From Amoeboaphelidium protococcarum X5 (lineage: Eukaryota > Fungi > Aphelidiomycota): a stretch of 64,000 nt of DNA. The stretch is from assembly GCA_023515725.1 (NCBI GenBank), contig JALDTO010000146.1, positions 248,001-312,000 on the forward strand, read 5' to 3'. Positions 26,501 to 64,000 of the stretch are shown piece after piece (the stretch's first letter is position 1; each line of letters opens with the position of its first letter). A program made the translations under genes and the position numbers. The notes below the pieces were generated by a model. It was not told the origin of the DNA. It saw only the letters and a program-made list of their open reading frames with translations, and did not search any database.

Positions 26501-27977
26501 AAAGATCATTTATCAAAAGTGTCGCGGTGAATTAGGAATGGCACCGTTGTATTAAGAGCTATTGCTGTATTTGAGCAGCTTTATAAAGTCTGAGCCGCAT
26601 CTATTCAGTTCCATGTACAGAGTGAGAATTCATTTTATCATTTCTGCAATGTTGGAGCAGATTCAGTTTTTGCGTCAGTGTGATCATGGTGCTAGCATGG
26701 ACATTCTTTTAAAGTTGTCGCCTATGGATATCAAGACATTGTTGGGCTACATTCTGCGCGCGAAAGATTCTCTGTGCACATCCCTGGCCACTGAGAATGC
26801 CTTATACTAAATTCCACTTCTGTCACCTGGGAATAATGGATTGGAGATCAATTTGACAGTTTAAAGTGCTGGCTACTATGATGGATCATTTGCTAATATT
26901 GGCGTGAATGGTCAATATATTGTGAAGGGCGGTTAGCGCGGTCTTAATGTTGCAATTGTGAACATGACCGAAGGATCTGTGTGTAGTGTTGAGCATTTCG
27001 ACACCTGGGCTAGTGGTGAGTAATCAGACAAGTTTATTGCATTTGTTGAGAATAATTGTAGTGCTCTCAATGGTAACAGTGGGAAGTTTTTGTTGATATC
27101 AGTGCGCGATGAGGCCACCGAGAGAATGACAGATAGATGCAAGGAGTTTTTGAAGTTACTGGGGTCCAATGATATCAAGTACTTGAAGTATCGCGACTCT
27201 TGGTGTATGATTTGCTAGTACCTGAATGGTGAATGGAGTCTTTTGGTTGAGCATTTGCAAGCGGCAAAGAATGGATCTACTCCAGTTATTGAACATACGT
27301 ACCATAAACGATAGCTAAATGAAGAGGACGACGAGGAGGGAGATCAAATCTAGCCATTGCAGCACCTCCGTTCTGAGCGTGTTCTCCCATCTAAAGGTCA
27401 GTGGGGCCGCCGTAGAAAGATTGAGGGAGCACTGTAGAGAACTCCATTCAACTTTTACCCAATGATCCATCGCATGTTGGAGCGTGTTAGAACTGGTATG
27501 AAGGTTGGCTCTTTCACTCTATCCCGTAATCCAACTGTTAGTGAGAAGACGCCCGAGGAAATAAGTTTTGCCCTGCTGGTGGATTCGATGTTGAGTTATA
27601 TTGATCCGGCAGAAAGAATGATTGCCATAGAGTGTCTTACTATATTGTACGATGTTGATTAGGTGCATAATAATTTGGATTTCTTGTCAAAGGTGGACGT
27701 GTTGGATATTGCGTCGCTGCTGTAATGCGCCTATCAACTGCATTGGGATGCTTTTATAAACACGGAAGTTAGAAAATAATTATTAGCTGCAACTGCTACT
27801 GAATAGAAGCAGCAGGGCTCAAGTGAACAAGATGTCCAATCAATGAAGAGTTAATATCAGTACTGTTAACATAAGGATGTGGCGAAGAAGCTATTCATCG
27901 ACTTGCCTGACATTGAAACTAAAGGCTTCTATGCATCTGCAATAGCGAAAACGTTTGGAATAAAACTGGATCAATGA
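23547..27977 (+). CDS. Phosphorylase b kinase regulatory subunit alpha/beta (GH15-like), with inserted ILEI/GG domain
   Basis: [15 protein letters not shown](TAG=Q)[50 protein letters not shown] and [13 protein letters not shown]. 1477 codons ending in TGA. Confidence 0.9.
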
Positions 27978-41419: not shown

Positions 41420-43738
<2,319 letters not shown>

Positions 43739-44216
43739 AGATGCCGTTTGGTCAGTTGTGTGTTAGTCAAATGATTAAATCAATGAGGAACAGTGAGGAT
43801 GAAGTAGGTGTGATGATGAATATATATTTTAGTGCTATAATCTTCCCTATAAGAGAGCAATGATGTGGTAGATTTTCACAGTCAATCACTCGACTCGACG
43901 GTCCCAAATCATTCAATGACAGTTCACGACTTTATAGTGCCTCAAATTACGTGAGTCTGCTTCACCTTTCTATGTGACTGTGCTCTGTGCAACACCAATT
44001 TCTCGTGAATGCAACAGCATGATTTTGAGTGGCCAATCAGAGACAATTGCAGGTGCCACATAGATTAATATCAGCCAAGCATTTAATTTTCCGTGATCAA
44101 CGAGTAACATAGACTTGAGCTACCCATCCGGCACTTCCTTTGTCCTGTGATACAATCGTCTTTATATTCACATTCTACTGATAAAAGATACAGATTATAT
44201 ATATACATTACTAGAT

Positions 44217-45953
44217 ATGCCTTCCATTAAAAGTTTATTTGTATCCTTGATGTTAGCCACACTGTCGGGTATTAGTGCTCAAGAAGTCAAGTGTCCGAAT
44301 GGCGTGTGGCCTCGTTATGATTTCAACGACATGCCAGATGATGCTTTGACAGAGTATTTTCAAGCGGTCAATGAGCTTTATCAGAATGGTGTGATGTACA
44401 GGCTGGCCAAAACTCACGAGAATAACTACGATGCTTGGCATTTGAATCAGGATTTCCTGGCTGTCCATCGTTAGTTTAGCTTAGAGTTTGAAAGAGAGCT
44501 GCGTAAAGTAAAGCCAGATGTGATAATACCTATTTGGTAATGGACTAATGACGCTGAAAATCCTGCAGCCTCGCGTATCTGGCAATATTACAGTCGTAAT
44601 GGCTTCAATCCAGTCTCTGATAAGCATCTGAGTATTCCCGGTGTGGACTCTGAAAATTATCCTACATGGAGTACGTACTGTATTCGTAACATCACTCAGA
44701 ATGAGCCAGTCAGAGGCTAAATTGCCAACTTCAATAGCGTTTACAACATGATCTCCACCTTGGCTTTCCCTGCATTCTCCTCTGCATTGGAGTACGGTCC
44801 TCACATGTCTGTGCATGCTAATGCTGGTGGTTTATACAGCACTTTCTTCTCTAACCATAGTCCTCGTGATTCTCTGTTCTTCCTCCATCATGGATTTATC
44901 GATAAGATTTATTGGTGGTTCTAAATGTACGACAGTGGCAAACGCTTCTCCGAGTATGGTGGTGTCAATTCTAGAAATCGTCCGATTAATGGAGAGAGTA
45001 TTGTGCCAGGCTTCTAGGGCCAGGTGCGCATTGATTCTCTGTTTGACGTACAAGATTTGTGCTACACTTACATGCCGTCTGGCTCCAGGTTTGAGCGTGG
45101 GCCGTTGAGGGACATTAATAGGCAGAGAGATATTGATATTGCCAATGCTGAGTTGCGCACACTTGCAGGATTGGCTCCTCCAGCACCTTAGCCTCCAGCA
45201 CCTTAGCCTCCTGCACCTTAGCCTTAGCCTCCATCTCCATAACCTCCTGCTCCTTAGCCATCGACACCAACTCCTCATCCTCCTTCACCTGCTCCAGCTC
45301 CATAACATCCTAGCCCAAGTCCGCATAGCACCACCGTCTTTGGGTAATCACATACTCCTACCTTTTCTACTGCTTCACCGGTCAAAAGTCCCCATACTGA
45401 CTCTCCTGCTCCAAAACCTATTCAGTTGCCTAGCACTGGTCCAAACCCTCACCAAAATGTTACCCAGAGTCGTAATACGACTCATACAGATTCCGGTCAT
45501 AAGAATCAGACTATTGCTCCATTGTTCAGCGACTGGGCTTTGAAGCTAATGGCCCCAATCCGTGAACAGATGCTCACTGCTGAGGCTATTACAATGGCTG
45601 CAAAGAGTGCAGACTTTAAGAAATGGTACGATCCTCAGGCAAGCAACATGGGTATTCCGAAGACGTATGGTGTAGCTAAGGCTGAGTTTTGCGAAAAGCC
45701 TGGTCACATGTCCATGAAGGTATCTCAAAGAGAGGCCCATTATGCAGCCGTCGAGTAGGCAAAGAATACCTCTACGCCGTAACATTCTGGTTCTCCATTG
45801 GGTTTCGTGTCGAATAAGACACATTCTTACGTTGAGAACACTGGTGAAAATGCTCTTGAGGATGTGATGGGCTCTAGTCAAAATGGAGCTTCTTCCGTAA
45901 TGGCATCTGCGCTTATGTCTGCTGCGACAATATTGTTATCGATGATGATTTGA
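44217..45953 (+). CDS. Secreted, putatively GPI-anchored tyrosinase (type-3 copper) with Pro-rich stalk
   Basis: Signal peptide; CuA H..AWH..FLAVHR; CuB GPHMSVH..SPRDSLFFLHHGFIDK; PQP repeats; hydrophobic C-terminus. Confidence 0.85.
45170..45330 (+). repeat. Coding Pro/Gln low-complexity repeat (CCTCCAGCACCTTAG; PPAPQ)
   Basis: Tandem cctccagcaccttag units in tyrosinase 1, with TAG read as Gln. Confidence 0.75.
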
Positions 45954-46413
45954 TACTTAAATGCAATTTTAATTTTTTAAGCTATCATACCGATTAGTTT
46001 GTTTTTCATTGTATAGAATTCTATCTTGGTATGTGCTAATACCGTAGTGGTTATATCGAAGTGACCATTCTGCAATCTGCGACGTGTTTTTACGCGCCTG
46101 GCAGGCATTGTTGTACACTTCTCTCTTATATGATCTTCAAAATTAATCAAAAATATCGCCAAGACCTAAACAGTAGTTTGGTGTTACAAAAATTTCACTA
46201 TTGGTATCACCATATCAAAACCGGGACTGGCTCATTGTGGTGTCACTTGAGATTAATGTCCAATCAGTCACGAGCCAAGCCAAAGATGTGACCCAAACTG
46301 TTATATTAAGCCCTCTGTTGGTCATTGCACTATTCCTTTACTACAAATACTTATATTGATATATAAATCATCTGTGTTTGTTTGTTATTTATATATCTCT
46401 GTGTAATTCAAAC

Positions 46414-48675
46414 ATGTTTCAATATATCATTAAATCCTTGGTGTCGGCAGCGATGATCATGTCTGCCTTCACACAGGCTCAGTCTTAATGTGCAGGCGGC
46501 GTTCGTGGTCGTTACAGCTGGGACGATCTAAGTCAATCGTAAATCGACGATTACCTGACAACATTGCGTCAGTATATTGATAGCGGCTCTATGGAAGTAA
46601 TGGTGAGAGCGCATTTCGATAACTATGGTGCTTGGCACAGTAACCAATTTTTCTTCCCTATCCACCGTGAATTGCTGCGTCGTTATGAGGCTGGTCTCCG
46701 TAGCATCAATCCTAATGTCATCATTCCATACTGGCAGTGGTCAAACGATGCTGCTAATCCTAATTAAGCGCGCATCTGGCAGTCCTTCAGTCGGAATGGG
46801 CGTAATCCTGCTAATGATCGTATTCTTGGCCAATTGCGTATGAATGTGTAAACTCCTCACCTTCTGGTACGTGACCTGCAGCCTAATGGTCTGAGATCAA
46901 ATTCTCTTGCTAGCTTGCGAACCGTTGAGAATCAGATCACCATGAATGATTTTCAAAATTTTAGCCGTAACTTTGAGTTTGGTCCTCACTATCTGGTGCA
47001 TGTCAATGTTGGCGGTCGCACGGGTGATTTGGCTTTTGAATTCTCTCCTAACGATCCTATCTTCTGGCTGCATCACGCCTACTGTGACAAGGTTTGGTGG
47101 TAATGGCAGAATTATGATGGCGCTTCTCGCTTCAACGTCTTCTACGGTGAGAGCCAGTATCGACGTAATGACAACATTACTGCTTCAATGCCTCTGCCTG
47201 GCTTGGGTGCAGCTACGACTTAGTAGCTATTCAATGTGCATGACTCTTGCTACACTTACGTCCCTCCTGGAACTCCCGCAACTTCTGCACCTCTGCAAAA
47301 CGCGTCTCCTCAAAATGACATCATCACCGTGGCGCGTGAAATGAATATTGTCCCCAATACTCCTCCTGCTCTATCTTCCTCAGCTTTGCCGCCGGCTAGC
47401 AGAACTATGTTCTCTACTGCGGTAGAAAGCAGAACTCGTGGTCAACCGCTTTCAACTAGTGCAAGGTCAACGAGAGCTAGAAGCAGTTCGCGCCCATGGG
47501 ACGACAGACAATCATCTGTGTCTCCATTGCCATTATCCACTCCATTATCCGGCTTTATGTCTACTACTATTGGTATGTCTCAATCTCCATTGCCATCTGA
47601 TAATGCATCCTCTGTCTCAAATTACGAGTATTTAACTAGCAGAACCACTATAATGCCTACCTCTGTTTAGAGTGGAGATGGTTGGAATACTCCTGTCCAG
47701 ACTCCACCTTCTAGTGACCAATGGGGAGCTCCTGGTTCTCTTACTTCGTCTCGCTTTGGTCCAGAAGCGACCGCTCTACCTGGCACCCCAGGCACTCCTG
47801 GTACACCTGGCACTCCCAACACTCCTGGCACTCCAGGTGCTCCTAACACTCCTGGTGCGCCTGGTACACCTGGCACTCCCAACACTCCTGGCACTCCAGG
47901 TGCTCCTAACACTCCTGGTGCGCCTGGTACACCTGGCACTCCCAACACTCCTGGCACTCCAGGTGCTCCTAACACTCCTGGTGCGCCTGGTACACCTGGC
48001 ACTCCCAACACTCCTGGTACACCTGGCACTCCCAACACTCCTGGTACACCTGGCACTCCCAACACTCCTGGTACACCTGGCACTCCAGGTGCTCCTAACA
48101 CTCCTGGCACTCCTAACACTCCAGGTACACCAGATACACCTGGATCGCCTGGCTAGCCTGGTTCTGGTGGTAACTCATCGGCTCCTGGTGCTCCTGGCTC
48201 GAATGGTAACGCCCCAGAAGAGTACTTTATTCCAGATTGGGCGCTCGAGCGCAAGCCTTAAATCGCTGATGGTATTCGTAATGCTATCAGCTTCTTAAAT
48301 GAAGCCAGCAGGCCTAACTTTATGAAGAGATACGAAGATTGTATCACCCTGCCTTCCGTGTTTCCTCTCCCTAATGGTAAAGATGTCAATAAGAAGACTT
48401 CTCTATCTTACGGTGCTAATGGAACTGCGCACCATAAGAATGCCGGCGCTAACAATGGCAACGCTGGATCCAACAGCTCTGCTATTCCTTATAAGACGAG
48501 CGCTGTAACTGCTTAAGCGACTCCAGCCGATGGATAGCAACCGGGATTGGGATCAAGTGTTGCAGTTGGCGGAGATTCGAGCGGTGCAAACGCTTCCTCC
48601 GGGTCCAAGACACTTTTCGCTCAAGGTCAAATTATCCTGGTGATTACTGTTGCTTCTTTGATGTACTTATTATGA
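46414..48675 (+). CDS. Second tandem secreted, GPI-type tyrosinase with Ser/Thr and PGT-repeat stalk
   Basis: Signal peptide; [16 protein letters not shown]; [28 protein letters not shown]; hydrophobic C-terminal tail; TGA at 48673-48675. Confidence 0.87.
47778..48150 (+). repeat. Coding minisatellite of 9-nt units (PGT/PNT/PGA) with 63-nt and 27-nt higher-order repeats
   Basis: cctggtacacctggcactcccaacact blocks are repeated almost perfectly. Confidence 0.9.
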
Positions 48676-48934
48676 TGAATCTAAAATATGAAAAATTACG
48701 TTCTATTTTATATTTGATTTAATCTTTATTTCTTACGGTAAGGATAATCAAGCGTAATTCGGGCGCGTAGCTGTTGCCAATCAAGAGACGCCATTGGTAG
48801 CGAGGCTAAATTACTTAAATTATGCCGGATATTTCTGGCTTTTATTAGCTCACTCCTCCACCTAATCTCTATTCCTCATACTCATCAGCATTTTAAACAA
48901 TAACGGATTATTAACCACTCAATATCGCTACATA

Positions 48935-49923
48935 ATGTCTACCGTAAGTCTTTTCTATTTGAAACAAGTTGTATCAGATGTTGTATTGTGTAGAAGTGCC
49001 AAGTTTGCGAGAAGACCGTGTATCCAATGGAGATGGTCAAGATTGACGACCTTACTCTGCACAAGACCTGCTTGAGATGTGCGCACTGCAACAACCAGTT
49101 ATCTCTGGGTAAGTATGCTGCTATCAACGGCAAATACTACTGCAAGCCGCACTTCAAGCAACTGTTTGCTCTGAAGGGAAACTACACGTCCGGGTTTGGT
49201 GAAAATGACACTGGCGCAAGCTCATCCCTTGGTGGCGTCTAGTTCAAGGGCCTTAACAACAACAACAACTCCAACGCTGGCAGCGAATCCAATCCTAAGC
49301 CGCTAGCAAACAAGAAGGCTGCTTCAAGCAATGCTATGGCTAAGGTTGGCTCGACTGCCTCTGTGCATGATGGCTCAAATGATGAGATCAAGGCAGTGTC
49401 AAGAGTCGCTGAAGGCATTCGCGCGTCCATCGAGAATCTGAAACAGACGGCCGCAAAGTCGTCCAGCAGATCTGAATTGCATCACCAGGGAAGCAAGTTG
49501 CGTATCTCTTCTGCCAACGATCTGGACTATGCATCTGGTGATGGAAAGAACACTTAGTAGTCTGTGAGAGCGAAATTCAACGCTTAATCTTCTGCTGCTT
49601 CCGGTGGCACCACTAATAAGTGTGCCGGCTGTGAGAAGACAGTCTTCCCTATGGAGCAGATCCAGGTGGAGTCGATTGTCTACCACAAGTCATGCTTCAG
49701 ATGTGCCCACTGCAACAACATCTTGAAGCTGGGCAATTACGCAGCATTGGACTCCAAACACTACTGCAAGCCTCACTTCAAGTAGTTATTCGCTCTGAAG
49801 GGTAACTACAATGAGGGATTTGGATCACGTCCTCACAAGGAGAAATGGAATCCGAAAGATTTGTCTCAGTCTCAGTCTGAGCTGGAACAGGCACAAGAGA
49901 AGACTGCTCCAATGTAAGTGTGA
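48935..49923 (+). CDS. Two-LIM-domain protein (EPLIN/LIMD2/plant-LIM type), intron 48944-48993
   Basis: Two copies of CxxCEKTVxPME..HKxCxRCAHC..[16 protein letters not shown]. Ends at TGA 49921-49923. Confidence 0.9.
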
Positions 49924-50058
49924 GCAGAATAATAATGATGATGTTGCTACTTGGAATATAAAGTTTACAGCAATGTATAGTTCATATATTTCAATACTTT
50001 CATATTCTTTTAGGATAATACTTACAGATTCTGGTAACAATTAGCACTCTTCTTCGCA

Positions 50059-51834
50059 TCAACGGTAGTACTCGTTAGAAGTACTATTTTTACATACCAA
50101 GTCACCATAAGATTAACGTTTGCGCTCGCGGCTTTACACGTCTGTGCTCGTCGCAGTTTGAGTAGAATTACGCGATTGGCCTGTCACTCCCTGTGAGGCA
50201 GATGAACTAACGCCTGTGTTAGGTCTTATCTTATCCAGTCCGGGAGGAGCTGTAGATTTACGCTTGAGAGAAGGTGTTACAGACTAGGATCTAGAGCCAG
50301 ATTCAGAGCCTTTACGACTATTTTCAGGGCTATTGTTGTTAGATTTGACAGCACCACGATACAACTTCACCCACTGAAGCTTACTAGGACTGATCAAATC
50401 ATATGGCACCTTAATGCTGCTCAAATACTTATCATTAGATGCATCTGGAACCAGAAATGCAGCACTAAATAAAGCTCGCGGAGGACCAGAGTCATGTAAT
50501 GAAGGATTGATGATATTAAGCACCTTATTACTGGCAGACGGCTCAATACCAAACGCTCCAGGTTAAAGAAGTTGCTACGCTTTCTTCAGCAAACGCCTCT
50601 TCACCTTGATAATCGAGTTTTACATTGAAAACACAGAAGACAATACACTCTAAGGTGTGGTAGTATCCATTGCTTTATCTCCGCTCTGTGCCAGCTTCTC
50701 TTCAAATTTATCACATCTTTCAGCTAAAGCCTTGTTCATTTCCACATAAGCATCATTCATGACTTGTACAATCTACTCTATTTTATCCACATGTTCACCA
50801 ACATCTACTGACCTATCAGCAGGATCTATAATGCACAATATATTCTATCCAGTCTTGAAATCACGCTAAAAAGGCCTAAAACGACCACATTAATTATCGT
50901 CATCAAACCTGGCGATACCCAACTTGTCATACATGTACTTTTAGCCATAAAATTCAAGAAAGTCCATGAATAGATTACCCATGTGAAGAACAGGATTGAC
51001 ATTGGAGTCTTTGAGCTATGGATGATTCTCAACAAAGCTTATCACCATCAGAGACGCGGCATATGACCCAATACCACCTGTAATTGCAGAGTGAACACCG
51101 CGACTAAATAAAAAGTACTTAAACAACATTATGAGTCCTCTATTGACAGCACCGAGTCGATCCAACTTCAAATAATGATCCACAATGTCAGTGCCCAACT
51201 TCCATTCCCAGTGATTAATGTACACATTGACGCGTAGATCCGACTGCTTGTCCACAAATCTGACGGTAGGCCTCACAGCAGTGAACACATCTGTAACACT
51301 CTTGGGATCTGCAACTTCCTTCGTTATGAGATCAGAGAATTGACGAAGCATCTCGTACTGATCAACCTTGTCACAGTTGGTGATGATGGTAACGTCCAAA
51401 TCAGCACTGCTCAAATAAGTTGCCAGCGGGAAGCTGCCAATAGCCACCAGGTCTGCCCATCTAAATTCAGCATTATCATTCTCATTAATAGATATGCTCT
51501 TATCCGCAGTGTCATCATCGCCGCTACCTACGCTGCGCATAATCTCATCATAAATCAGAGGATCATTGATATTGATGGCTTCATAGATGCGCAAAGGCGG
51601 CCTTGACCACAACTTGTGCACAATATGGCGCAATCTACCCACAAGCCACTCACGCGCCAAATGTTCATGCGGTTACGGTGTAACAAAGTTGACAAACTCC
51701 AAAGCCTCTACATTGAGTGCATGAATAGGATTGGCAGGATACCTACGATCGTGTGTTATCCACACTGGCAGATACTCTTCTTACGCAGAATCATCAACAC
51801 CCACATTCCTATCGTCGCCGTTGCTCATAATCAT
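50059..51834 (-). CDS. Non-canonical poly(A) polymerase, Trf4/PAPD5-like
   Basis: IGSFPLATYLSSADLDV; KYFLFSRGVHSAITGGIGSYAASLMV; PAP-associated DPADRSVDV. 592 codons. Confidence 0.8.
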
Positions 51835-52488
51835 TTATAATATATATATATATTTTTAATAATATAACTTCTTTCACCTAGACTGCGTTGTATTAAGCGA
51901 ATGATTTATGATATGATCTGATGGGTAAAAGGTGGAATAACCAGAAAGGCGCACGCGTCAATGATGATAAAGACGAAATAAAGTGAAAGTGTGTCGTAAA
52001 TCGAATTTCCTCATAGATTGACGGCACAAAGTCACCGCTAACAAGCGTGCAAGAAATTGCTGTTCTTAGAGCAGTTATATATTATTCAGCGTGCTTGTCT
52101 CATCGTCTCATAATCATTTCAGCAGTGCAGAAGAATGATCGTGGGCGATGCAACACCGAACAGTTTCAGATCTCATTAAAGTTTCAGCTTTTCTTCCTTT
52201 TGACGCGACGGTGGAGAAGAATTTTGTTTAACGGCAGGGGAGAGTGAGAGTTATATGGCAATTTAATATAAAACGGCGTTCATTAATTTAATTCAATTCA
52301 TTACTCTCATTCATTATAGAATAGAATTTCAATCACTGGTGGTTTTTGACAGATACAGTTACATTCTACTGACTAGCTGGATATTATTAATTGCTTAAGT
52401 AGTACTTTACACTTCCCAATCTCTTCTCTTATTATAAAAAAGACCTTGTCTGAGGATATTTGATTAATTAAACTGAATACTTGGTAAA

Positions 52489-54669
52489 ATGATGGATTAT
52501 TAGACATTCTGCGTAGCTCTGCATAATTATAACGGTTCAAGGGATGATGAACTTTCATTAAGGATTGGAGACATTGTTAAAGTGTTCAAGAGAGCTGATG
52601 ATGGCTGGTGGTTTGGATATAAGAACTTGAACAATATCGCAGCGTCACCAGCAGATAAAGGCAGCCATGGATGGTTTCCTTCTAATTTTGCCTATGTGCC
52701 TGAGGATGGAGAGTTTGATTTATCTCAAGGTTATTATTTGCAGTCTTAGTAGCAGCAGTCTTAGTAGTAGTAGTAGAATCAGCCGTAATCGCATCCTGAT
52801 CTGCAACGATACGCCAAAGTGTAATATGACTATGTGGCATAGGAGGAGGATGAACTTGATCTCACAGCTGGCGACATTGTGGTTATTATAAACACTGAAG
52901 AAGATGATGGATGGCATCGTGGGATATTGAAAGAGAAGCTTGGACTATTTCCAGCCAATTTTGTATCGCTCCTGTTGGAGAAGGAAGTTTTAAGTAGCGC
53001 CGTGAACACTAGCAATAGCCAAGTCTCATCAAAGATTCCCAATAATAGAAGATCATCCCTAGCTGTTGACCGCTTGAATTAGTTGCAGTTTTAGTAGTAA
53101 TAATAACAACCGACTCACTTATAGAATGCTGGATTTGAGAACTAGAAAGTCTTATCCACTGTGATGGTCAGTTTTGATTACAATGCTCAGTAGCCTGATG
53201 AACTATAATTGAAGAAGGGCACACTCGTGGATGTTATTCATAAATAGGATGATGGTTGGTGGACGGGTGTTGATCTGAATGGACAGGTTGGTGTATTCCC
53301 GTATAATTTCTGTCGTGAATTGACTCCGGAGGAGAGAAAGTAATACAATGTATCCCCTGGTAATGGTATTAATCATCGATAGGATTAAAGGGGTGTTGGG
53401 AGCAGTGTTAAAGGTTCTGGGCAGTCCGGTAAGTTATCTGTGACTTTAGCTAATTCTAATACCACCACCGCGTCTAATGGGAGTGGGAATGATAATGGCG
53501 GCAATAAATTGAAGCCGATACAGACTTTCAACATAAGTCCGCCGGCGGTATCCAAGAAACCGTCTGTAAAGACTCCTCCTCAAGTCAAGCCAAAGCCATA
53601 GGGTATACAATACGGTAGAGTTGCAGATCCCTCTTAATCTCAGTAATAGTAATAAGTGGCATCCGGTAAAGATTCACAAGAAGGTGGCAAATCTAATAAT
53701 AATGCTGTCTTATACAAGGATTTTATCGCTGTGAACACTTAAAAGTTACCATCACTGACCAAGGATAGAATTAGTCCTTAGTAGAGTGGGAATTAAAAAG
53801 CTTCTCCTGCTGCAATGATTGCTACATAAGGATAATTATCTTCCTCTCCCGGCACATCATAATCACCTCCTATAGTAACTCCATCTGCTCTGGCTATCAA
53901 CTCGCCGTAGCAATATTTTAGCAGCAGTGGCAATCTTGGTCAGAGTGATATTAAGCAGAATGAAGGTGGTAGTAGTGTGAATAGTTCCGATAATGGAACT
54001 CATTTTGATGAAGATGCAAAGAAACGAACACTGAAGTAGATTAGCGACGAACTAAAGAGAGCCAACTCTTCTAAATAGTCTGGCGGTAAGTCTGCAGCGA
54101 CTGACAAGGATCTGGTGCATGCGATTCCTTAGTCCTCAGTTAACTCTTAATCGTCTGTTATTATCAGAGACGATGGCACGGAGAGTAATGATCATACCAT
54201 AGTTGTTCCTTAGTAGCTTGCTAATATCCTCTCGGATCAGAATGGTTCTGCTTTACCAACAACTAGCTACACTGATGCTGGACACAATCAGCATCATTAT
54301 GGCAGTGTCGATAACAACACTGACTATGGTGTAGATAGTGATCAAAATACTCTGATTATAGATGAAGGGGATTTTGTAAGTCAATATGCTGCAGCGCGAT
54401 CGCCATGCTCACTACCCGCCATTGATTACCCATCAACAGCAGCTAATGAGATGCAATCTTAAAAGGGTCATTATATGCATTAGTAGTAGTAGTAATAGTC
54501 ATAGTAATACGACTTGGACTCTATTCCACTGAATGTGCAAAATTACGTCAAAGATTAGATTTAGCGAATGAAACTGCAGTTTGAAAAGCTGTTATAAGAA
54601 GAGCAAGATAAACGCTAGAAGTTGGAGTAATAGTTGTCGCAGCTTTAAGAGTCATTGAGCAAAAAGTGA
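52489..54669 (+). CDS. Triple-SH3 adaptor with Pro-rich region and C-terminal coiled coil (CD2AP/CIN85-like architecture)
   Basis: Three SH3 domains (ALHNY..DELSL..DGWW..GWFPSNF; YDY..EDELDL..DGW..GLFPANFV; FDY..DEL..DGWW..GVFPYNF), PPAVSKKP/PPQVKPKP, polyQ and a terminal coiled coil. Confidence 0.82.
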
Positions 54670-54827
54670 ACATGATGCCAAGAATGTCTAATACACAATC
54701 ATTATATGATACTTATTCAAGCCAGATCCACGTAAAGATAACCTTTAACACAGTACAAAAAGTGATGATGCTTTATCTACTATTTAGTTCACATTATTTA
54801 CGCCATTAATAAATCTTCTTAGAGCAA

Positions 54828-56627
54828 TCAAATGTCAATATCCACTTCTTGCAAGTACTCTTCAAAGGATGACGCTGCAGCCGGCACCTGATTATGATTA
54901 CCATTAGTCTTTGCCATATCAACGACAGTGTGATCAGCAGTACTTAAAACATCAGCTCCGGCACTTTTAGCAGAGCTGTCAATTGAAGATTACTTATCAG
55001 CGTTAGTTCCATTTTAAATCTGAGGTTAAGGTGAGACGTTCATTATGGACCGAGATTTAATTCTGGCAAATGGATCATTCGCACCTTTACCATTCATCAA
55101 CTTCTCATAACGTTCCTTCTTCAACTTCTCCTCAGCCCGAGACACCTCCTCCATATTCTTCCTCCTATTCTTTTCATTTAATTGTGCCCAAACATCTTTC
55201 TTACTTGGACTCGGCTTAATCACCTAGTCTCGCTTCATCTCAGTGTATGCCTGGAATGACAGATAACTAGAATCAGGATCTTCAAGATATTCAGTGATCT
55301 GCCTGATCTGCACATTGAAATCTATGACGCGCTCAGACTGGCCCATCGAGTCTGCTTCATCGCGGAGAGCAACCAGCCGCACCTTCTCCGCTAATAAATT
55401 CTGCGATTCTCCGGCAATCTTCTTCTTCTCCTAAATCATGTAATTGATCTCTTCATCTGTAAATACATGATGCACAGCCTCTTGTATACCATCACGCAGT
55501 CTCTAAATCTCAATCTCACTCAAGAATCGACACTTTTCACTCTTCATCACAGCCACCCATCTATCGTATTCATGCTGCGTAACATCAGAATTACTAACGA
55601 TATCCATCAGGAACACCTTTTCAGCCTTTCCATGCCTGATTCTAAGTGCTGTCCTCGTAGTTGTCTTGTTGATTTTGTAATTACGATGATACTCTTCAAC
55701 ACCGACAATCTGTGCCAATCGATACACCGGCTCACCATCCTCAGGCCTCTGGCCAACACCGAGCCTTATAAAACATCCCAGCACAGTATCTTCAAAGAAC
55801 GGGGTGAACATCCACTTTTCTAATTGATCCCGGGACAAGCGGATAGAATTAATTTGACTCAATGTAGGTACAGAGCGCTCTTTACCAGCACCACCTGCAG
55901 ATGCGCCAAAAGATCCGTCGAACAATCCGCTCTTATCATATGCTCTTCTAGCACGCTTCAAATACGAATCTTTACCACCACCGCGTCCATATCCCAAATC
56001 ACCATCTCCATCGCTATCTTCATACTCATCGAAATCTGGAAGATCAGTCTGCTCTCCCTTCTAACGCTTCTTCCTCCTCTCGGTTAACTCTTTAAGTTTA
56101 GTACTTCTCCTACTACTACCGCTAGTCTTCTATCTCTACCCAGCGGAACTTCTAGTACGACGGGCTTTGACACCACCTTTACTGGCAGCCGCTTCAGCAC
56201 GTAATCTCTTCTTCAACTCAATCTTTTACAATCTCAACTACCTCTTCTCCTCCTGCTCAGCCATAAAAGTCTCTCTCTAAATTTCTGTCATACTGCGAGT
56301 CAGTCGCTCAATCTCTTCAGGTGAAAGGGCATCATCAACTCCAAAGTCCTCCTCTTCATCTTCATCATCATTATCCGATGCAGACAATCTATCAAAAGAA
56401 TCTTCACTGAAACCGTCCAAATCATCCTCATCTTCCTCAGAACTGCCATGTACATTACTAGAATCATAATTATCAGATCCATACGCACCGTCATCATCAT
56501 CATCACCACCATCTATAGACTTGCGCTTACGTACACTTTTACCCTTAGCAGACTTCTTCTATGCCTAGTTGACAGCTTTACTACCCGCAGCCAGACCCAA
56601 TAATTCCTCATCAAAATCGTCATCCAT
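54828..56627 (-). CDS. RTF1: RNA polymerase-associated protein RTF1 (Plus3 domain)
   Basis: MDDDFDEELLGLA start; MTEIQRETFMAE HMD-like segment; Plus3 domain IRLSRDQLEKW..GCFIRLGVG..VYRLAQI..VSNS; C-terminal VDIDI before TGA. Confidence 0.88.
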
Positions 56628-56880
56628 CTTTATTTATTTGATCAAAAGGTGGAGTAATATACAACTTACACACACAATAATAAGAATGATGCGGGCGGCC
56701 CGGTTGAAGGAGGAAAGAGAGTAACGAGTACTGTAAGAACGAAAGTAAAGAGGGAACGAGAAGGAACGCGCGAGAGAGAGAGTGCCGCGAACGATCTCAT
56801 TCAGCAAAGTTGAATAGAATCTGATTGAACAAAGAAACGCGCACAATTTTTGATTGTAGAGTAATACACAGTAGAGTATA

Positions 56881-58684
56881 ATGTAGAAGTTGATGACTGC
56901 ATCTTCAACTAGATTCGCTCGTACTAGGTAAGTTTTCTTGTGCTCTCTCTCTAATATGCTAATTATTGATTAATTAATTGTAGTTGGCGATAAACTTTAA
57001 ATACCTAAAGGTGGGTAAAAAGTGGTTCTTAAACTGCGTCCATCTCTGAGAGTTAGTCCAATGTCTTAAATTTACGTATCAGCGATCTGAGATAGGACAC
57101 GGAAATTGATATTCCGTCTGATGGTTAGGTGATGCTTAGACAAGTGAGAGTTCATGCTGTGCGAGTGACTAAACGTAATTGCTTTATCATACTCCGCTAG
57201 GGTGGCGAGACACTATAAGCTATCGTGTCAATAGATTAAACTGGATCCACTGCTTCGCTCTATGAATAGTGCTTACAGTAAGTGTTGTATTAAATCATTA
57301 TTCGATTCACTGTCACTTACTAAATTGCACATTGTAGATTAAGAATAGAGTCAATTGTAAATGTTCGAGGTAGATTGGTTCCGCTGGGAAACTAATAGAG
57401 GATCAAAGCATGTACTGTACATGGATATGAATTACACGCGACATCAGTTGATATCGTCAGTGCTCCGACTGTTGATAAGTTGCCATTCAGTACTGCAGAT
57501 GCTAATATTGTCGATCGTATCCACTTGGACACTCGTCTAGATAATAGAGTACTAGATCTCAGGGTAAGAATATCAGGTGTATAATCCCTCTTTAATGTGC
57601 ATATGATTTATTAATGAATATAATTGATGTGTAGAGCAGTGTTAACTAAGCCATATTCTCTATTTAACATGGCGTGACTTAGGCGTTTAGATCGTTTATG
57701 CTGTAGAATGACTTTATTGAGATACATACACCTAAATTGATATCTGCAGCCAGCGAAGGTAGTGGCTCCAGTGTATTTAAAGTTGACTACTCTTTTGGCT
57801 AGTAATCTTAGAGTGATGAAGCACCCTAGTCTAATACATAATAGGATGGAGTGAATAATAGTGCTGCTACTTAGCAAAATACGTAAAATGCATTTTTAGC
57901 TCAGTCTCCATAGCTATACAAGTAGATGATGATCTGTGCTGATTATGAGCGCGTCTTTGAGATTGGACCAGTGTTCAGGGCTGAGAACTCTCATACTCAT
58001 AGACATTTGACTGAATTCACGGGACTGGATTTTGAGATGTAGTTGAGAGGTGATGATGCTGTGGATGAAGCTGTTCATATGATAGACCGTCTGTTTAGAT
58101 TTATTTTTACCGCGCTGGATGGTGAGTACAAGCAGTAAATAGACACGGTGCATCGGTCGTTCTAGAGTTAAGCCTTCTAATTATCTAAAGAGACTCCGAT
58201 ACTGGAGCACAGAGATGCTGTCTAGATGCTTCTAGATGCAGGTGTACACATGGACCCGATGGATGATTTTAGTACAGAGAATGAACGACAGCTTGGGCGT
58301 CTAGTGAAAGATTAGTTCTAAACTGACTTTTTCATGGTGAAGAAGTTCCCACTGGAAGTGAGGCCATTTTACACAATGCCGTATTAACACAGTGATGATA
58401 AACACCACCTTTACTCGCTGTCTTATGATGCATATATGAGAGGGGAAGAGATACTGTCTGGTGCATAGCGTATTCATGATTACCAGATGCTTGCTGATAG
58501 AGCTGAGAAGAAGCGTGTTGATGTGAACTAGATTCAGAGCTACATGGATGCTTTCCGCTACGGTGCGCCACCTCATGCAGGTGCTGGTATTGGCTTGGAG
58601 CGCGTGGTGATGCTCTATCTCGACTTGAAGAATGTCCGCCGCTCTTCACTCTTCCCGCGGGATCCCAAGCGTATTTCACCATGA
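56881..58684 (+). CDS. Aspartyl-tRNA synthetase, eukaryotic/archaeal type, with N-terminal presequence-like extension; introns 56928-56983, 57278-57337, 57564-57634
   Basis: [24 protein letters not shown](TAG)LYK(TAG)[34 protein letters not shown](TAG)[16 protein letters not shown] and LFPRDPKR. Confidence 0.93.
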
Positions 58685-58777
58685 TTGTACTAGCGACTAT
58701 TTTTGCTATACGAATAGACTTTTAGATTGAATAATGTTTGGCATATTTCAAAGATTTATATTTATAAAACAATTTAA

Positions 58778-60058
58778 TCAATTGATAAAAGGATTCTAGA
58801 GCAGTTTGCGCCGTAACAATATACTTAGAACAATTCCACATACTGAGATTGTCAAGTAGAAGATCAACATTGAATCGTACTGTCCGTTATACTGAGAAAC
58901 ACCAGATGGTACGCGCTTTGCTTTAGGAGCTATAGATATCAGCCATGCAATGAATATCGGCGTAGTAAAGAACGTAGCATTGAGCAGACACGAAGATACA
59001 CCATAAGCACTGGCCACTTTAGCTTCTCGCTGTGTTTTCGGATGAACCAGGATAGGCCTTGGAGATACAATATCTTTATCGCATAGATCCACTGTGTTTT
59101 CAATACTTGTCTTTATCAACTTGCTGCCGCTGCTGACACCATCATTATCCAGTAATAGAGGAGCAGCGGATGGCAATTCAGATGCTGATTAATCAATCAC
59201 AGCCGAGTCGGGAGATAACTTTGTGTATTTCGATGCATGATGAATAGTCTCTGCCATTAGGCTGTATATCACAGAGCCAAATGTAGCATATCCTGCGCCC
59301 AATATAATTAAAATGGTTCCTGGACCAACGTGGCTGATCTAGAACAGCAGATGAGCAATTGATATACAGACACCGCTGAATATCAGCTGGCTCACTTTGA
59401 CAACCTGGCGACCGCGGAGAGAGGACAGCTACTGCTCACCGAATATGAACGGTTTCTCTGCTAATTAAGCTATCATGGGCATTGATATCACAGACAGAGT
59501 ATCCGGAATACTGACAAGAGATGAAGCCTTAACATCACTGTTCTATGCGGATGAATCTTAATCTGAAAAGTACTTGGCATCGATAAATGCTGTGGCCATA
59601 GGAAGAAATGATATTGTAGCCGTGGAATAACAGATCAATATGAGAATAGTCATCCAATAAGTGGCTGGCAAATCTTCAATATCTCTGGGTAGTAGTGACC
59701 GGAATCGATTTGACATTAACCCCAGTACTCTACTTGTCCATGTCGACCGTCGATCAATAGTCGATGATAAAGACTCTTAAGAGGTGCTCACAATGTCAAC
59801 ATGGCTATGATTTTACACGACATTAGAGGAGTTGGTGACAATATTTAATAAATTTATCGCTTCCTTTGAAGATTAGCGACTCTGTTGGCGAGACTAAGTT
59901 CTCCTTCTATTCGTCTCCAGCATTGGACTTTCAACAAGATTGGGCACTCTATCCAAAAGGACGCTTTTATCGCTTCCTGGTAATTACTCAGCTATAGACT
60001 TGTTGGTCAAAATAGTTTTAGCATTTAGTTATTATTCTGATGCTAACGTTGCATCCAT
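58778..60058 (-). CDS. MFSD1-like transporter, only the C-terminal (6-TM) half recognisable
   Basis: DLPATYW..SSLVSIPD..GAGYATFGSVIY..SAYGVSS..LNATFF parallels the second half of the MFS gene at 39397. Preceded by a hydrophilic ~120-aa segment; upstream in-frame TGA at 60122-60124. Confidence 0.6.
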
Positions 60059-60070
60059 ATTAGAAGTAAT

Positions 60071-60098
60071 ATCGTTTATTTGGTACCAAATAAACGAT
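60071..60098. repeat. Perfect 28-bp palindrome
   Basis: atcgtttatttggt|accaaataaacgat. Confidence 0.9.
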
Positions 60099-60352
60099 CT
60101 TTAAATATCCCTTGAAAACGTTCAAACAGATCTTAAACACGCCTTGATATTCTTTCACTTGTGATTGTGCTCTGCTGTTCTCTATTGAATCTTCTTTAGA
60201 TGAGTCTTAGCAAGGGTTACAACTCTGAGCTCAAAAGGCTTTCAATTTTGGGCCTGCTCCTTTGATAAAGTTGAACCTTCAATGATTGGTCAGATTCTGT
60301 CGAATCAGAGAGGCTTGAGAAAATACAAATTTTCTTTTACACCAAAAAGACA

Positions 60353-62365
60353 ATGAATTCCCAACAACAACTTGATGAAGTAAATGCAGCAATAGCCGCA
60401 ATTCAACAAGAAATTAATGCAGCGAAGAAGAAGGTCGAGAAAGCGGAGGAGAGGCTGGAGAAGGCTATTGCAGAGGGCAAACCAGTGGATATTAGAGCAG
60501 ACCTCAAGTCTTTATTAGAAGCAGCCACTGCTGAGCTCACTCGCTTGGGCAAAGAGAAGGAAAAGCTGATGGAGCGCGAGACCCTGCTCTTACAACAAAC
60601 CGCCGCCAAAATTGAAATTAGATCCGGCCCGAAAATGTTCGCTCGATTTCCCTCGAAATCGCCTGCCACGACGGAAGTGCCACTCGATATTGGGCTCGAC
60701 TACGCCTTGATCAAATCATGGGCATTTGAAAAGTTTACCAACCGCACCAAGTCTGTTGATGATCTCTTTGTTTTTTACTCCACACGCAGTCATTTGAAAT
60801 GGAAGAAACTCCATGGTAGTGAGCAATTGAAGACACTTGTTGAAGATGGAGCGCCGATCAAGTTTTACTTCACATTTGTGGACGATGTCAAAGATGTTTC
60901 ATTCACCGAGCTGGACGTTACCGCTTCATCCGTGATCAAGCATCTTATGAGCTCATCTCAAGAGTTAGGAATGAGCGCGACAATCCCTGATCGACCGGCT
61001 ACTTATGATGACCTTTATTTGTGGTTGTGCGAGTTTATGACGAAGCCTCGTGTTTTGGCGTTGGACGAAATTCAAGTTTGCCCCAAATTCTTGAAATGGC
61101 TCATTGCCGCTTGGGATTATGTTACTACTTCTAATGTTCCGAAAAAGGCGTTATTGCTGATACTCGGAACTCCAGCACGTGGATCGAGCCAGGCACTTAC
61201 CATCGATCCTAATCAACGAAACAAGGTTTCCCATTTGATATTCGAACCCCTGGATGCACACGAGACTGTTCAATTGTTAAAGACCCGCTACCCGAATATT
61301 TCTCTGATGGATTTAATATTTTGTTGGTCTGTTTGTGGTGGCAACCCGCGCAATCTGAAGTCTGTTTGTACCTTTTGTTTCGATTCTTCTGGCAAACTCA
61401 GTGCTGAGAAAGTTTTGGAATGGTTGGATGCGTGCCGACGTGAAGTTACAGCATCGATTAATTCGAGAGAGCTCACTGTTTTGGAAAAACTTGCTCGGAC
61501 TCGTTCTGCAGGGGGGTCATACAGGATTGAGGATACGGAAATTTTTCATAATCTGATTCGCCGCGGATATTTGACACCAGTTTATGAGAATTTAACAGAG
61601 GACGGAAATGAGAGGATGATGGTCACAGATCCCCACATGCTTTCTGTTCTCACGTTACCCATAAACAGAAAGCGCGCTCATGATGAATTGTCAAACTTGG
61701 CAGGTTTGGGGATGGAGAGTTTTATCACATCGTTACTTGGTATCATGTCCAATATTCCTGGGTTTGAGTTTATGGGCATGCCAATGGAAGGTAAAATACC
61801 ACGCTCGCTGTATTTCATCTCCCACGATGTCGATTTTGTTCTGTACAACTGTTATCGTGGTGATGATTATCACACTCTTGTTGTTGGGAATTCAAAGCTT
61901 TCTTTTCGAGAGTGGTGTGAGTGTGATTTCGTCTCATTTTTTGACAAAAATGCTATGAATGTCATCGGGCCTATTCAACATGATATTCGAAAGATTGTTA
62001 TTGCTCATGTTCTTCCGAGCTGGGAGATGTATGATCATGGAAATAGGCATATTGATGCTTTCGCACAGAGTAAGCTTCGAAGCCAGTTTCAGCATATTCC
62101 TATTGAGCAGGTGTTGTGGGGTGTCGACAGGATGATTGATTCTCTGCCGGTTGGATTGAAGGTAATTAATAATGATCAGGGGTGGCCTATTGTGCAAAGG
62201 CCCAAGTTTGGGGAGAGAATAGTTCAATATAAGGATATGGGTGTTCTTGTGGTAGCAGGGCAGCCGGGAGTAGGGAAGTCATACTTCATGAGGGACATGC
62301 TCTTGGACATGAGTTTCTGTAAGAACCAGCCACGCAAATACATCAACTTGATGGTTGAGGATTAA
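60353..62365 (+). CDS. Coiled-coil + P-loop ATPase (archaeal-ATPase/STAND-like) + putative PD-(D/E)XK-fold protein; ends at 62374 if TAA is read as Gln
   Basis: 670 uninterrupted standard-code codons; Walker B RVLALDEIQ; WSVCGGNPRNL (GxP); HDVDFVL..VVGNSKL; C-terminal Walker A GQPGVGKS. Confidence 0.75.
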   Translation: MNSQQQLDEVNAAIAAIQQEINAAKKKVEKAEERLEKAIAEGKPVDIRADLKSLLEAATAELTRLGKEKEKLMERETLLLQQTAAKIEIRSGPKMFARFPSKSPATTEVPLDIGLDYALIKSWAFEKFTNRTKSVDDLFVFYSTRSHLKWKKLHGSEQLKTLVEDGAPIKFYFTFVDDVKDVSFTELDVTASSVIKHLMSSSQELGMSATIPDRPATYDDLYLWLCEFMTKPRVLALDEIQVCPKFLKWLIAAWDYVTTSNVPKKALLLILGTPARGSSQALTIDPNQRNKVSHLIFEPLDAHETVQLLKTRYPNISLMDLIFCWSVCGGNPRNLKSVCTFCFDSSGKLSAEKVLEWLDACRREVTASINSRELTVLEKLARTRSAGGSYRIEDTEIFHNLIRRGYLTPVYENLTEDGNERMMVTDPHMLSVLTLPINRKRAHDELSNLAGLGMESFITSLLGIMSNIPGFEFMGMPMEGKIPRSLYFISHDVDFVLYNCYRGDDYHTLVVGNSKLSFREWCECDFVSFFDKNAMNVIGPIQHDIRKIVIAHVLPSWEMYDHGNRHIDAFAQSKLRSQFQHIPIEQVLWGVDRMIDSLPVGLKVINNDQGWPIVQRPKFGERIVQYKDMGVLVVAGQPGVGKSYFMRDMLLDMSFCKNQPRKYINLMVED

Positions 62366-63379
62366 TCACTTTGATAACTTTGACATACTATGTCTAAATA
62401 GATTTGCATTTATGTAGCAGCAAAAGGGTGATCAGATGGTGTAGACCGTGGTATGGCAGGCGCGTAGTGTCAAAATGATGTATATGACTTAAGGTATCAA
62501 TAGTAAGATAATATTCAACGTCTGTTTCAACAGCCTGCAGTTGTTTATTTATTTTTTACATCTAAACATGAAGCAGGAATGGACCAGACAAATGTGTAAT
62601 TCTGATTGCCAAATAATTAAATAAAAACTCTACTTCTATAATAGACGTATAAGTAATCGTTCAGTTTTATATTCTCCCTGGTAATGTCAATAAGGTAAGT
62701 TCAAGTTCGTGAAGTGTAAGAACGGTTGGCACTTCATCCGGAACAGTTAATTTTTGAGAACGACTCCGGAAGAGCTGACGTCTTTCAATATAAGCTGGTC
62801 TTGTGATTACTGTATATCTGTTATAATCATCATCATATTAATTATACTTACTCTACTACCACCTTCAACAATAATGTCGACTGACTAAAATTAGATCATA
62901 ATCCAACCGATTCAGCCAATCTATTTATAAGACACGTCATTACAGTGCATCAAATATAAATTTACTCTTCTCCTTGTTAATAATCTTGTACTTGGCTTAT
63001 TTTTTCACTTTCAACGTCCTGTGATAATTGCGAACCAAGAGGAGTGAGCAACGCGAACGGAACGGAGTTCGCTATTAAGCCAGTCGGTTTCAATGCATTT
63101 CCTCTTTGGGCGATTCGTTTCAAATCCTAGGTTGAGAGTTTCCGGAAATTCTGTTCGTCATCAAAAAAAAATCTTTTTCCTCAGACGTTCATACTATTTG
63201 AAAATGTGCATTCCTGGCTAATTTGACGCGTAGATTACAATTCTGTTTTCAGATTTTAAATAGCTTCATTAGTTTGGCCACAAAGCGGATTCACTTTTCT
63301 CACGAAGTTTCTTACTGTTTCACACTGATTGAGCTCTACGCGTCATTCTCTTTTGCACTCTGAAACAACAAGGAGAATT

Positions 63380-63890
63380 ATGGATGATTAAGGCTTAAAT
63401 ACCATCACACGTCATTATAAGTGAACGAGTAAACTGAATGCTATTTATGGTCCCTCTCCTCAGTCGGCTAGGGAACATCAAGGACGCGTTTTAGTTTAAT
63501 TAATTTAAGAAGAGATAATCGATCAGTAACAAAAACTGTATATGAATATCGTGAATGATTAACAATCAATCCAGAAGAGGAGCTTGATTCTGTTAGGGAG
63601 TTTTGAAAAGCAGGTAGTTTTCAAACTTTGTTGGATAGCTGGTACAGACTTTCTTTGAATATCCTGGTAATAACTTCGCAATTATTAAGTTATGTGATCA
63701 TAAAGTATTTGGAACAGCGCTTTGCAATAGAAAACTGCCTCTAAATACCGTAGGCAAATGGCAAAGTATAATGTAAGCATCAGTAATCTATGTGGCTATG
63801 AATTCAAAAGTTGGTTTGGGTTTAACGGCAGCTTTTAAATGTGTTAGTTGTCATGAGTATGAGAAGTTGAGACGCGTTTATAGATTTTGA
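63380..63890 (+). pseudogene. Possible decayed ORF with in-frame TGA at 63422
   Basis: About 170 codons are open under TAR=Gln apart from one TGA. No recognisable family. Confidence 0.25.
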
Positions 63891-64000
63891 GCGGGCAACT
63901 TTATAAGCAATCATATTTTGACTAAAAGCTCCTGTCAATGGTTGTTGATTCAAGACTTCGGTGGATCAACACTATATACAGGTCATCATTTTTTATCGCC

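Follow-up and report, generated by a model that had tools for sequence, protein, structure and literature searches.

A gene without TAA or TAG codons beside remnants of a Polinton-like virus in Amoeboaphelidium protococcarum: a probable import from the standard genetic code

Changes in the genetic code have often been proposed as a barrier to viruses and gene transfer. Elements of one code within a host of another are described for the phages of code-25 bacteria of the candidate phyla radiation (CPR; PMC10746230) and for recoded Escherichia coli (PMC6207430), where a stop-to-sense change permits the translation of standard-code genes with stop read-through only. Among modular effectors, the Crinkler or CR proteins are described, in the summary of Zhang et al. 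2016 given by PMC5289972, as having module types that include NTPase with helix-turn-helix and restriction endonuclease (NTPase+HTH+REase), REase with kinase, and HNH, and headers that can be alpha-helical besides ubiquitin-like. In this study I describe a gene that touches both subjects, in a 64,000-nucleotide (nt) stretch of the aphelid fungus Amoeboaphelidium protococcarum X5, a species reported to read UAR as glutamine (PMC5304391). This whole stretch, referred to as the window, comprises positions 248,001 to 312,000 of the forward strand of contig JALDTO010000146.1 (below C146; assembly GCA_023515725.1). The gene, located at 60353-62374 of the window on the forward strand, has not a single in-frame TAA or TAG (together TAR) among its 670 sense codons, and it is probably a recently acquired standard-code mobile gene that arrived as cargo of a Polinton-like virus.

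Long open reading frames (ORFs) that end only at TGA and are full of TAA and TAG are common around the gene, so TAR has a sense meaning in this genome; the frame at 23508-27974, for instance, has 44 TAR and 44 CAR (CAA or CAG) among its 1489 codons, and the frequent use of TAR by neighbouring genes, on which an original prediction from the bare sequence was built, is thus confirmed. The gene begins with the ATG at 60353 and has 670 sense codons, 23 of which encode glutamine (15 CAA and 8 CAG) and none of which is TAR; these figures, taken from a recount of the ORF at 60353-62365, are the same as those given in the original prediction. The background consists of 126 further ORFs delimited by TGA, each 300 codons or longer and none overlapping another, from 324 kb of sequence (the window, an extension of C146, and the contigs C207, C98 and C264), about 1.4% of the 23.6-Mb assembly. 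In these ORFs the share of TAR among the glutamine codons has a mean of 0.52, a standard deviation of 0.14 and a minimum of 0.22. A beta-binomial distribution fitted to this background gives a probability of 8e-6 for no TAR among 23 codons, and of 6.5e-5 for at most one among 24 when the terminal TAA of the gene is counted, while the pooled binomial test of TAR against CAR, the check named together with the prediction, gives 3e-8. The longest TAR-free run in the sample is the gene's own, with 696 codons, and the next longest unrelated run has 395. With glutamine left out, the synonymous codon choice of the gene is host-like (z -0.36, rank 40 of 129), its GC content at third codon positions being 0.44 versus 0.39 ± 0.04 in the host; since the other codons are used in the ordinary way, the anomaly is specific to TAR.

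The richest frame of the window in both TAR and glutamine is the 730-codon, TGA-delimited ORF at 52477-54666 on the forward strand, with 61 TAR and 29 CAR. Short paralogues of the N-terminal header of the gene product, which have 1-4 TAR per about 80 codons, were considered as evidence for amelioration and dropped, as they may be decayed frames.

Downstream of the last sense codon the sequence reads TAA (62363-62365), TCA, CTT and TGA (62372-62374), and the gene therefore stops properly under either code, as predicted. The host presumably reads the terminal TAA as glutamine, which would give a product of 673 amino acids (aa) ending in ...MVEDQSL. Directly after the conserved C-terminus a TAR is also found in two distant metagenomic homologues, which makes the terminal TAA probably the ancestral stop. 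In another homologue, 22% identical (L042: ENA metagenome scaffold_20932, 68-2731), a conserved C-terminus with the motif GHRGVGKS continues past a single in-frame TAR, and this sequence comes either from another TAR=Gln organism or from a freshly broken gene.

The closest named protein is found in Amoeboaphelidium occidentale, which is separated from A. protococcarum by a long distance within a polyphyletic genus (PMC10608142). In A. occidentale the gene (JALGPX010000114.1) is a solitary unit of 2.1 kb between the genes for UDP-glucose pyrophosphorylase (UDPGP) and a PX-domain protein, and its alignment with the window covers only 60285 to about 62410. The two copies share 89% of their nucleotides over the C-terminal 1.6 kb (1617 nt) and 80% over the header, whereas the A. 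occidentale neighbours MCM7 and UDPGP are only 65-68% identical in DNA to A. protococcarum, where they are located on the contigs C13 and C244; the gene copy is thus non-syntenic, and its other flank in A. occidentale has no match in the A. protococcarum genome. The copy has a TAG at codon 174 and a CAG at the position of the terminal TAA. In the long ORFs of A. occidentale, among them MCM7, a chitin-binding gene and a 411-aa gene, TAR is either absent or is the annotated stop, and this species uses the standard code. The two named Amoeboaphelidium species accordingly differ in their nuclear genetic code, standard in one and UAR=Gln in the other. As the gene is free of TAR and far closer to the A. 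occidentale copy than housekeeping genes are, it fits an import from the standard-code side. Synonymous divergence (dS) over the C-terminal module is 0.28 from A. occidentale and 0.052 from the homeologous copy on C207, with a ratio of nonsynonymous to synonymous divergence (dN/dS) of 0.25-0.33 in both comparisons.

Parts of a Polinton-like virus lie on both sides of the gene. On its left, at 60079-60210 on the forward strand, lies a virus-end-associated repeat, probably a terminal repeat, which recurs 0.7-5.8 kb from integrase copies on C142, C205 and C264 and at C146:856698 (82-90% identity), and is also present on C207 (97%). At three of the four integrase loci the orientation is the same as here, with spacers of 0.7, 2.5 and 5.8 kb. 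On the right flank, 2.4-13 kb downstream on the opposite strand, Pfam matches reveal fragments of an rve integrase (E 6.6e-9 and 3e-10) and of DNA_pol_B_2 (E 6.9e-33); the latter remnant is the C-terminal part of a protein-primed DNA polymerase B (PolB), and about 8 kb of TAR-rich ORFs separates two PolB fragments on C146. With the repeat on one side and the integrase on the other, the gene appears enclosed in the variable slot of a Polinton-like element, and because C207 keeps both the repeat and the gene, the gene probably lies inside that element. Integrase and PolB are also present at many other sites of the genome, as an adjacent pair on C98 among others, and the intact copies are devoid of any stop codon across 347-628 codons. 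These TAR-free viral flanks, together with the non-syntenic 89%-identical copy in A. occidentale, support what the original prediction had proposed, namely that the gene was acquired recently, by horizontal transfer or as a mobile gene, from a donor with the standard code. In the literature searched I found no report of an association between Amoeboaphelidium and Polintons.

One metagenome contig (L039) carries the gene at 96.7% nucleotide identity and, within about 300 nt downstream of it, an intact integrase of 347 aa with TAR at its end; two repeats that separate gene and integrase on C146 are missing from this contig. In a freshwater metagenome, 15-17 contigs have the virus-end repeat, seven of which diverge abruptly at exactly 60079. 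A 20-nt probe from the end repeat retrieved six metagenome contigs, four of which match in the adjacent palindrome at most, and two of which contain all 130 nt of the repeat, with uninformative ORFs. The copy of the virus at this locus is a stump, cut off at the second copy of a flanking duplication (X2) and lacking genes for capsid, packaging ATPase and protease.

This duplication is direct, 3.1 kb long and 88% identical over 3121 nt in a self-comparison. Its first copy, X1, lies at 56960-60062, and X2 at C146:323503-326609, outside the window and 15.4 kb downstream of X1. The last part of X1 is the 3' half of a transporter-like gene, represented by the truncated ORF 58781-60121 on the reverse strand, while X2 runs on into the full-length gene, one possibility being that the latter was repaired from an uninterrupted allele after the virus had disrupted it. 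The half gene had been labelled a major facilitator superfamily (MFS) transporter; the truncation stands, and MFS is a putative label, as stop-free pieces of the transporter-like ORFs give no Pfam match. At the junction between X1 and the inserted DNA is a 34-nt palindrome centred on GGTACC (60068-60101; inverted self-match, 94%), variants of which, 27-32 nt long, occur in unrelated metagenome contigs. Between gene and integrase two unrelated multi-copy repeats are inserted back to back, one at 62418-63028 and the other from 63028 to about 64486 (together occupying 62418-64000 of the window), each with at least 4-6 copies elsewhere and with copies on other contigs that are 77-94% identical. 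The disturbed neighbourhood that had been described is therefore real, with a truncated gene, a palindrome and, directly downstream, multi-copy repeats.

A genome-wide duplication has been reported for A. protococcarum (PMC10608142), and the homeologous contig C207 is collinear with 43217-60090 of the window at about 90% identity. It holds the gene, the repeat and the duplication alike, which answers the question of synteny at the homeologous locus. Its gene copy (95.7% identical) is damaged by a TGG to TAG change at codon 150 and by an extra G in a run of G that shifts the frame. The insert on C207 is also bracketed by the duplication (C207:830416-833558 and 835968-837925), and C207 lost its integrase side after integration. 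As the virus-end repeat and the duplication are retained, a single old insertion is shared by both subgenomes, which does not refute a recent acquisition. All four copies of X are similarly diverged (90-92.7%), and their informative sites are mosaic, with 37, 26 and 20 sites for the three groupings; this similarity suggests that the insertion dates from about the time at which the subgenomes separated and that gene conversion followed. Elsewhere in the collinear part, C207 (814879-819525) is longer by 4.6 kb at 46099-46102, through an insertion or deletion in one homeolog, and 47779-48197 consists of internal repeats of about 75% identity and 52% GC that match C207:821204-821578 in several registers and probably belong to a repetitive coding sequence.

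The conserved 5' leader of the gene unit (60282-60352, forward strand), where the homology with A. occidentale starts, matches the leader of a paralogue of the header-gene family (C135:10188-10244) and that of a metagenome contig (L040:701-736, 94%). At the 3' side, homology ends at 62411-62417 in C207, where the unit is joined to X2, in A. occidentale, in the metagenome contig L039 and in runs X5 and X8. Neither terminal repeats nor a target-site duplication nor a poly(A) tail is visible at the unit ends. Retroposition of an mRNA, which the gene-sized and intronless unit could bring to mind, was rejected, as both a poly(A) tail and a target duplication are lacking. Data from at least 14 studies, among them metagenomes of freshwater, biofilm and sediment, contain parts of the stretch, and one contig of 2461 nt spans 60111-62411 with a left flank of the C207 type. 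In a poly(A) RNA library from a freshwater sample, three short contigs match 61442-62312 with 0-2 differences, which suggests that the gene is transcribed.

I propose that the gene evolved under the standard code and arrived as cargo of a Polinton-like virus, which would have integrated in the transporter gene before or around the divergence of the two subgenomes. The virus may then have lost most of its body, leaving the end repeat, the cargo gene, the rve integrase and the C-terminal part of PolB. TAA and TAG would be absent because they were stops in the former hosts and because too little time has passed since for CAR codons to become TAR, and the original TAA stop would now be read through to the TGA three codons on. 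The protein would be a modular, effector- or toxin-like enzyme with a swapped-module header, a beta-grasp domain, a permuted P-loop NTPase and a PD-(D/E)XK nuclease; its C-terminal Walker A strand would fold back into the NTPase core, presumably making it an NTP-controlled nuclease of DNA.

Two chytrids, Geranomyces variabilis and Phlyctochytrium arcticum, have homologues of aa 93-670 at 21-25% identity, as do metagenomes. A protein-based search for related loci in metagenome and viral contigs found none, a profile search and a search with the chytrid homologue added no relatives and reached no named Crinkler protein, and a sequence search of the PDB returned only noise. AlphaFold gave a poor full-length model (mean predicted local distance difference test, pLDDT, 59) and one of the nuclease domain with a pLDDT of 62. 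The header, aa 1-92 (60353-60628, forward strand), is predicted as a hairpin of two helices, 3-41 and 45-89, with a pLDDT of 83-88. It is common to more than 40 protein clusters, in which, by Pfam, it precedes HNH_2 (P0004, P0025, P0034, P0060) or Pkinase (P0003, P0044) modules, and here the NTPase-nuclease. Residues 40-72 in the second helix (60470-60567, forward strand) form a hypervariable patch, which has a dS of 1.7 versus 0.05 for the rest of the gene and in whose place C207 and the runs X5 and X11 have an equally long but diverged sequence; such a replaced patch points to recombination among family members.

In the window copy the patch is nearer to the header that another organism has on a paralogue with a kinase (86% of nucleotides) than to its own homeolog. 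This paralogue, on a JGI 3300072388 contig of 4691 nt (L038), combines the header with a PD..EDK motif and a kinase in 520 TAR-free codons with 24 CAR, and its neighbours, a 423-aa ORF and a glycosyltransferase-34 fragment, are TAR-free as well; the contig seems to derive from an organism with the standard code in which this header is 86% identical in DNA. A link between this kinase paralogue and the virus, through a match to C142 near an integrase, was discarded as the match is a simple tandem repeat.

The header is followed by a putative beta-grasp (PB1/ubiquitin-like) domain at aa 93-185 (60629-60907, forward strand), which opens with FARFxxK, is conserved in the chytrid homologues and agrees with the predicted secondary structure; the PB1 domain 2bkf matches the protein model in Foldseek with probability 1.00 and a TMt of 0.62, and I place this match on aa 93-185 by inference. 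The next part (60908-61657, forward strand) is, by weak Pfam and fold matches and by invariant residues, a P-loop NTPase core without a Walker A of its own, followed by a helical, winged-helix-like part. It has a Walker B DEIQ at aa 238-241 (61064-61075), GTP at 272-274 and GGNPR at 329-333. AAA_14 (E 4.7e-4; 20.6 bits versus a threshold of 27) and ATPase_2 (E 1.2e-3; 19.1 versus 33.2) both remain under their gathering scores, and both matches begin past the P-loop of the profile; the AAA_14 match is present in seven of nine family members. In Foldseek the full-length model matches the ATPase_2 protein 2qen, Cdc6/Orc1 and STAND NTPases, and also plant nucleotide-binding leucine-rich-repeat (NLR) proteins, the latter mainly through the resemblance of a coiled coil plus NTPase and not as a sign of homology.

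The missing Walker A is found at the other end of the protein, about 400 residues after the Walker B: a strand, a Walker A GQPGVGKS (aa 636-643, 62258-62281) and a helix (62219-62317, forward strand) would form the permuted first element of the NTPase. In two Geranomyces and two metagenomic homologues (P0010, P0011, P0013, P0043), GxxGVGK[ST] likewise lies 15-45 residues from the end. Docking of aa 600-670 onto aa 186-440 gave an interface score (ipSAE) of 0.67 (0.64-0.71 in three runs), versus 0.00 for the best of three controls; among solved complexes 51 of 78 attain a mark of this kind, and among mismatched pairs 2 of 108. The runs share at least 69% of their contacts, with a partner pLDDT of at least 68, and they place strand 630-635 between the strands 268-270 and 293-296 and the P-loop beside R333, which is the place of strand 1 in ASCE NTPases. 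This score backs, without proving, the binding of the C-terminal strand to the core. The PADLOC profile PDC-S01 matches in permuted order too, with its N-terminal positions on the C-terminal piece and its later positions on the N-terminal piece of a homologue. Taken together, the models and motifs support a circular permutation of the NTPase, conserved from aphelids to chytrids; no description of a P-loop NTPase with its Walker A last was found in the literature searched.

Between these two parts lies a candidate restriction-endonuclease-like PD-(D/E)XK domain (aa 436-565; 61658-62047, forward strand) with the residues E455 and D492/D494 and, within the strand GNSKL (512-516), S514-x-K. Both aspartates and the lysine of this strand are invariant, the motif GxGxE is conserved as well, together they yield the signature GxGxE...DxD...xK, and the topology of the nuclease-domain model, alpha-alpha-beta-beta-beta-alpha-beta, fits the PD-(D/E)XK core. 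More than 20 of its top 50 structural matches are PD-(D/E)XK nucleases (HamA, FokI, Hjc, the R2 endonuclease, AddA and others), with Z scores of at most 6.5 where caution applies below 8, while Foldseek found no match with this model. The protein could act as an NTP-controlled nuclease in the role of an effector, a toxin or a weapon between mobile elements.

Several explanations other than a standard-code gene brought in by the virus need to be considered, the main one being that the 2.1-kb unit 60282-62411 is a self-mobilising selfish cassette, for instance of a homing-nuclease-like kind, for which the virus was merely a landing site. The unit has the same 3' boundary at 62411-62417 in four contexts, it stands alone in A. 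occidentale, it encodes a predicted nuclease, paralogues of its header carry HNH nucleases, and no other copy of the virus holds the gene. However, its ends lack target-site duplication, terminal repeats and poly(A) tail, homing requires a flanking homology that is absent at the A. occidentale site, and family members that bear a kinase are ill-suited to homing, so that I regard such a cassette as unlikely, if worth keeping in mind. An assembly chimera or contamination might be suspected since repeats surround the gene and a gap interrupts its copy on the A. occidentale scaffold; yet two contigs of more than 1 Mb carry it with native flanks on both sides, two samples of organism A contain it, as do several metagenomes, and the 2461-nt contig runs from 60111 to 62411 with the C207-type left flank, all of which renders this hardly credible. 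A native gene of vertical descent, whose lack of TAR would be due to chance or to an expression-linked codon bias, is in line with the syntenic homeolog on C207, the host-like codon usage outside glutamine and the constraint indicated by a dN/dS of 0.25-0.33, but is very improbable in view of the beta-binomial P of about 1e-5, the 89% identity with A. occidentale at a non-syntenic site against 65-68% for MCM7 and UDPGP, and the virus parts and duplication that flank the gene.

Alternatively, TAR could be avoided by selection, either through shuttling between codes or, as the original prediction had allowed, through translation in the standard-code cytoplasm of the algal host, with TAA...TGA as an adaptation to both codes. 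The intact virus genes of this genome are TAR-free too, the gene stops correctly under both codes, near-identical copies of it are present in the data of 14 or more studies, and the copies that did gain a TAG are decaying (codon 150 on C207, codon 174 in A. occidentale). However, a neutral divergence of 5-9% since the insertion (homeolog dS 0.05-0.09) predicts about one CAR to TAR change per copy or fewer, which makes selection unnecessary and leaves the algal variant without support; other family members have no nearby TGA as a backstop, and no signal peptide or sign of mRNA export was found, the N-terminus MNSQQQLDEV showing no obvious hydrophobic signal. I consider selection of this kind improbable. 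A related and doubtful, if attractive, idea is that virus and cargo circulate among aphelids of differing codes and are kept free of TAA and TAG, with TAA...TGA tandem stops, so as to be expressible in both.

Some observations weigh against an import as viral cargo. The gene is in no other Polinton-like copy of this genome, and the solitary A. occidentale unit between cellular genes indicates that the gene unit may move alone; that copy is moreover broken by a gap in the assembly and by three or more frameshifts. The flanking duplication of 3.1 kb is unlike the product of a Polinton integrase, and the end repeat is never found as an inverted pair, so that I infer rather than observe its terminal nature. 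The frequency of TAR-free genes is known from the 324-kb sample, 1.4% of the genome, and the direction of transfer is read solely from the absence of TAR. On the side of the protein, the confidence of both AlphaFold models is low (pLDDT 59 and 62) and the Z scores of at most 6.5 are weak support for the nuclease fold.

If the gene was indeed imported, standard-code DNA, in the form of a Polinton-like virus together with an effector-like gene that is under constraint and apparently intact, entered a UAR=Gln nucleus and persisted there, with a read-through of three residues as the sole visible cost. The absence of TAR would then serve as a built-in clock or marker that could flag every recent import into genomes of this kind and show which way it was transferred. 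The near-identical copy in a standard-code relative makes this testable in culture, and both parasites are pests of algal ponds. It would also mean that Crinkler-style modular effectors can ride on eukaryotic viruses, and that the protein is a conserved natural case of a P-loop NTPase with its Walker A strand moved to the C-terminus. Should the circulation between codes be true, the virus and its cargo would constitute a naturally code-ambidextrous mobile element of eukaryotes.

The protein resembles ATPase_2 (PF01637)/AAA_14 and the STAND NTPases with a PD-(D/E)XK nuclease, including PDC-S01, in its Walker B, sensor-like GT, GGxxR, helical domain and nuclease. It differs in having the strand, Walker A and helix at the extreme C-terminus instead of the N-terminus, and in that all matches here are below the curated thresholds. 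With the Crinkler/CR effectors, as described in PMC5289972, it has in common that one header is set on differing enzymatic modules, the NTPase-nuclease, kinase and HNH modules all being CR types, and that the header family is found in chytrids and other zoosporic parasites and is mosaic and recombining. The order of its predicted domain types is that described for the CRN NTPase+HTH+REase. In contrast, the header here is a helical hairpin, the Walker A is C-terminal, the carrier is a Polinton-like virus, and the Pfam Crinkler domain has no match in the gene product at E <= 1, nor in the chytrid homologues at E <= 0.01. The predicted resemblance to Crinkler-type proteins thus holds for the architecture but not for family membership, and the protein appears Crinkler-like in design without being a member of the family.

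The viral part of the locus compares with the Polinton/Maverick elements and Polinton-like viruses of protists (PMC12220804) in its protein-primed PolB and rve integrase, in its multiple copies, both intact and decayed, and in its variable cargo slot near one end. It differs from them as a stump without capsid, ATPase and protease, with a duplication of 3.1 kb instead of a short target-site duplication, and with a code that is not the host's. As in the phages of code-25 CPR bacteria (PMC10746230) and in recoded E. coli (PMC6207430), an element of one code is found in a host of another. In contrast to both, the host compartment here is a eukaryotic nucleus, the element a DNA virus or transposon with an effector gene of cellular type, and a near-identical copy is present in a standard-code sister lineage.

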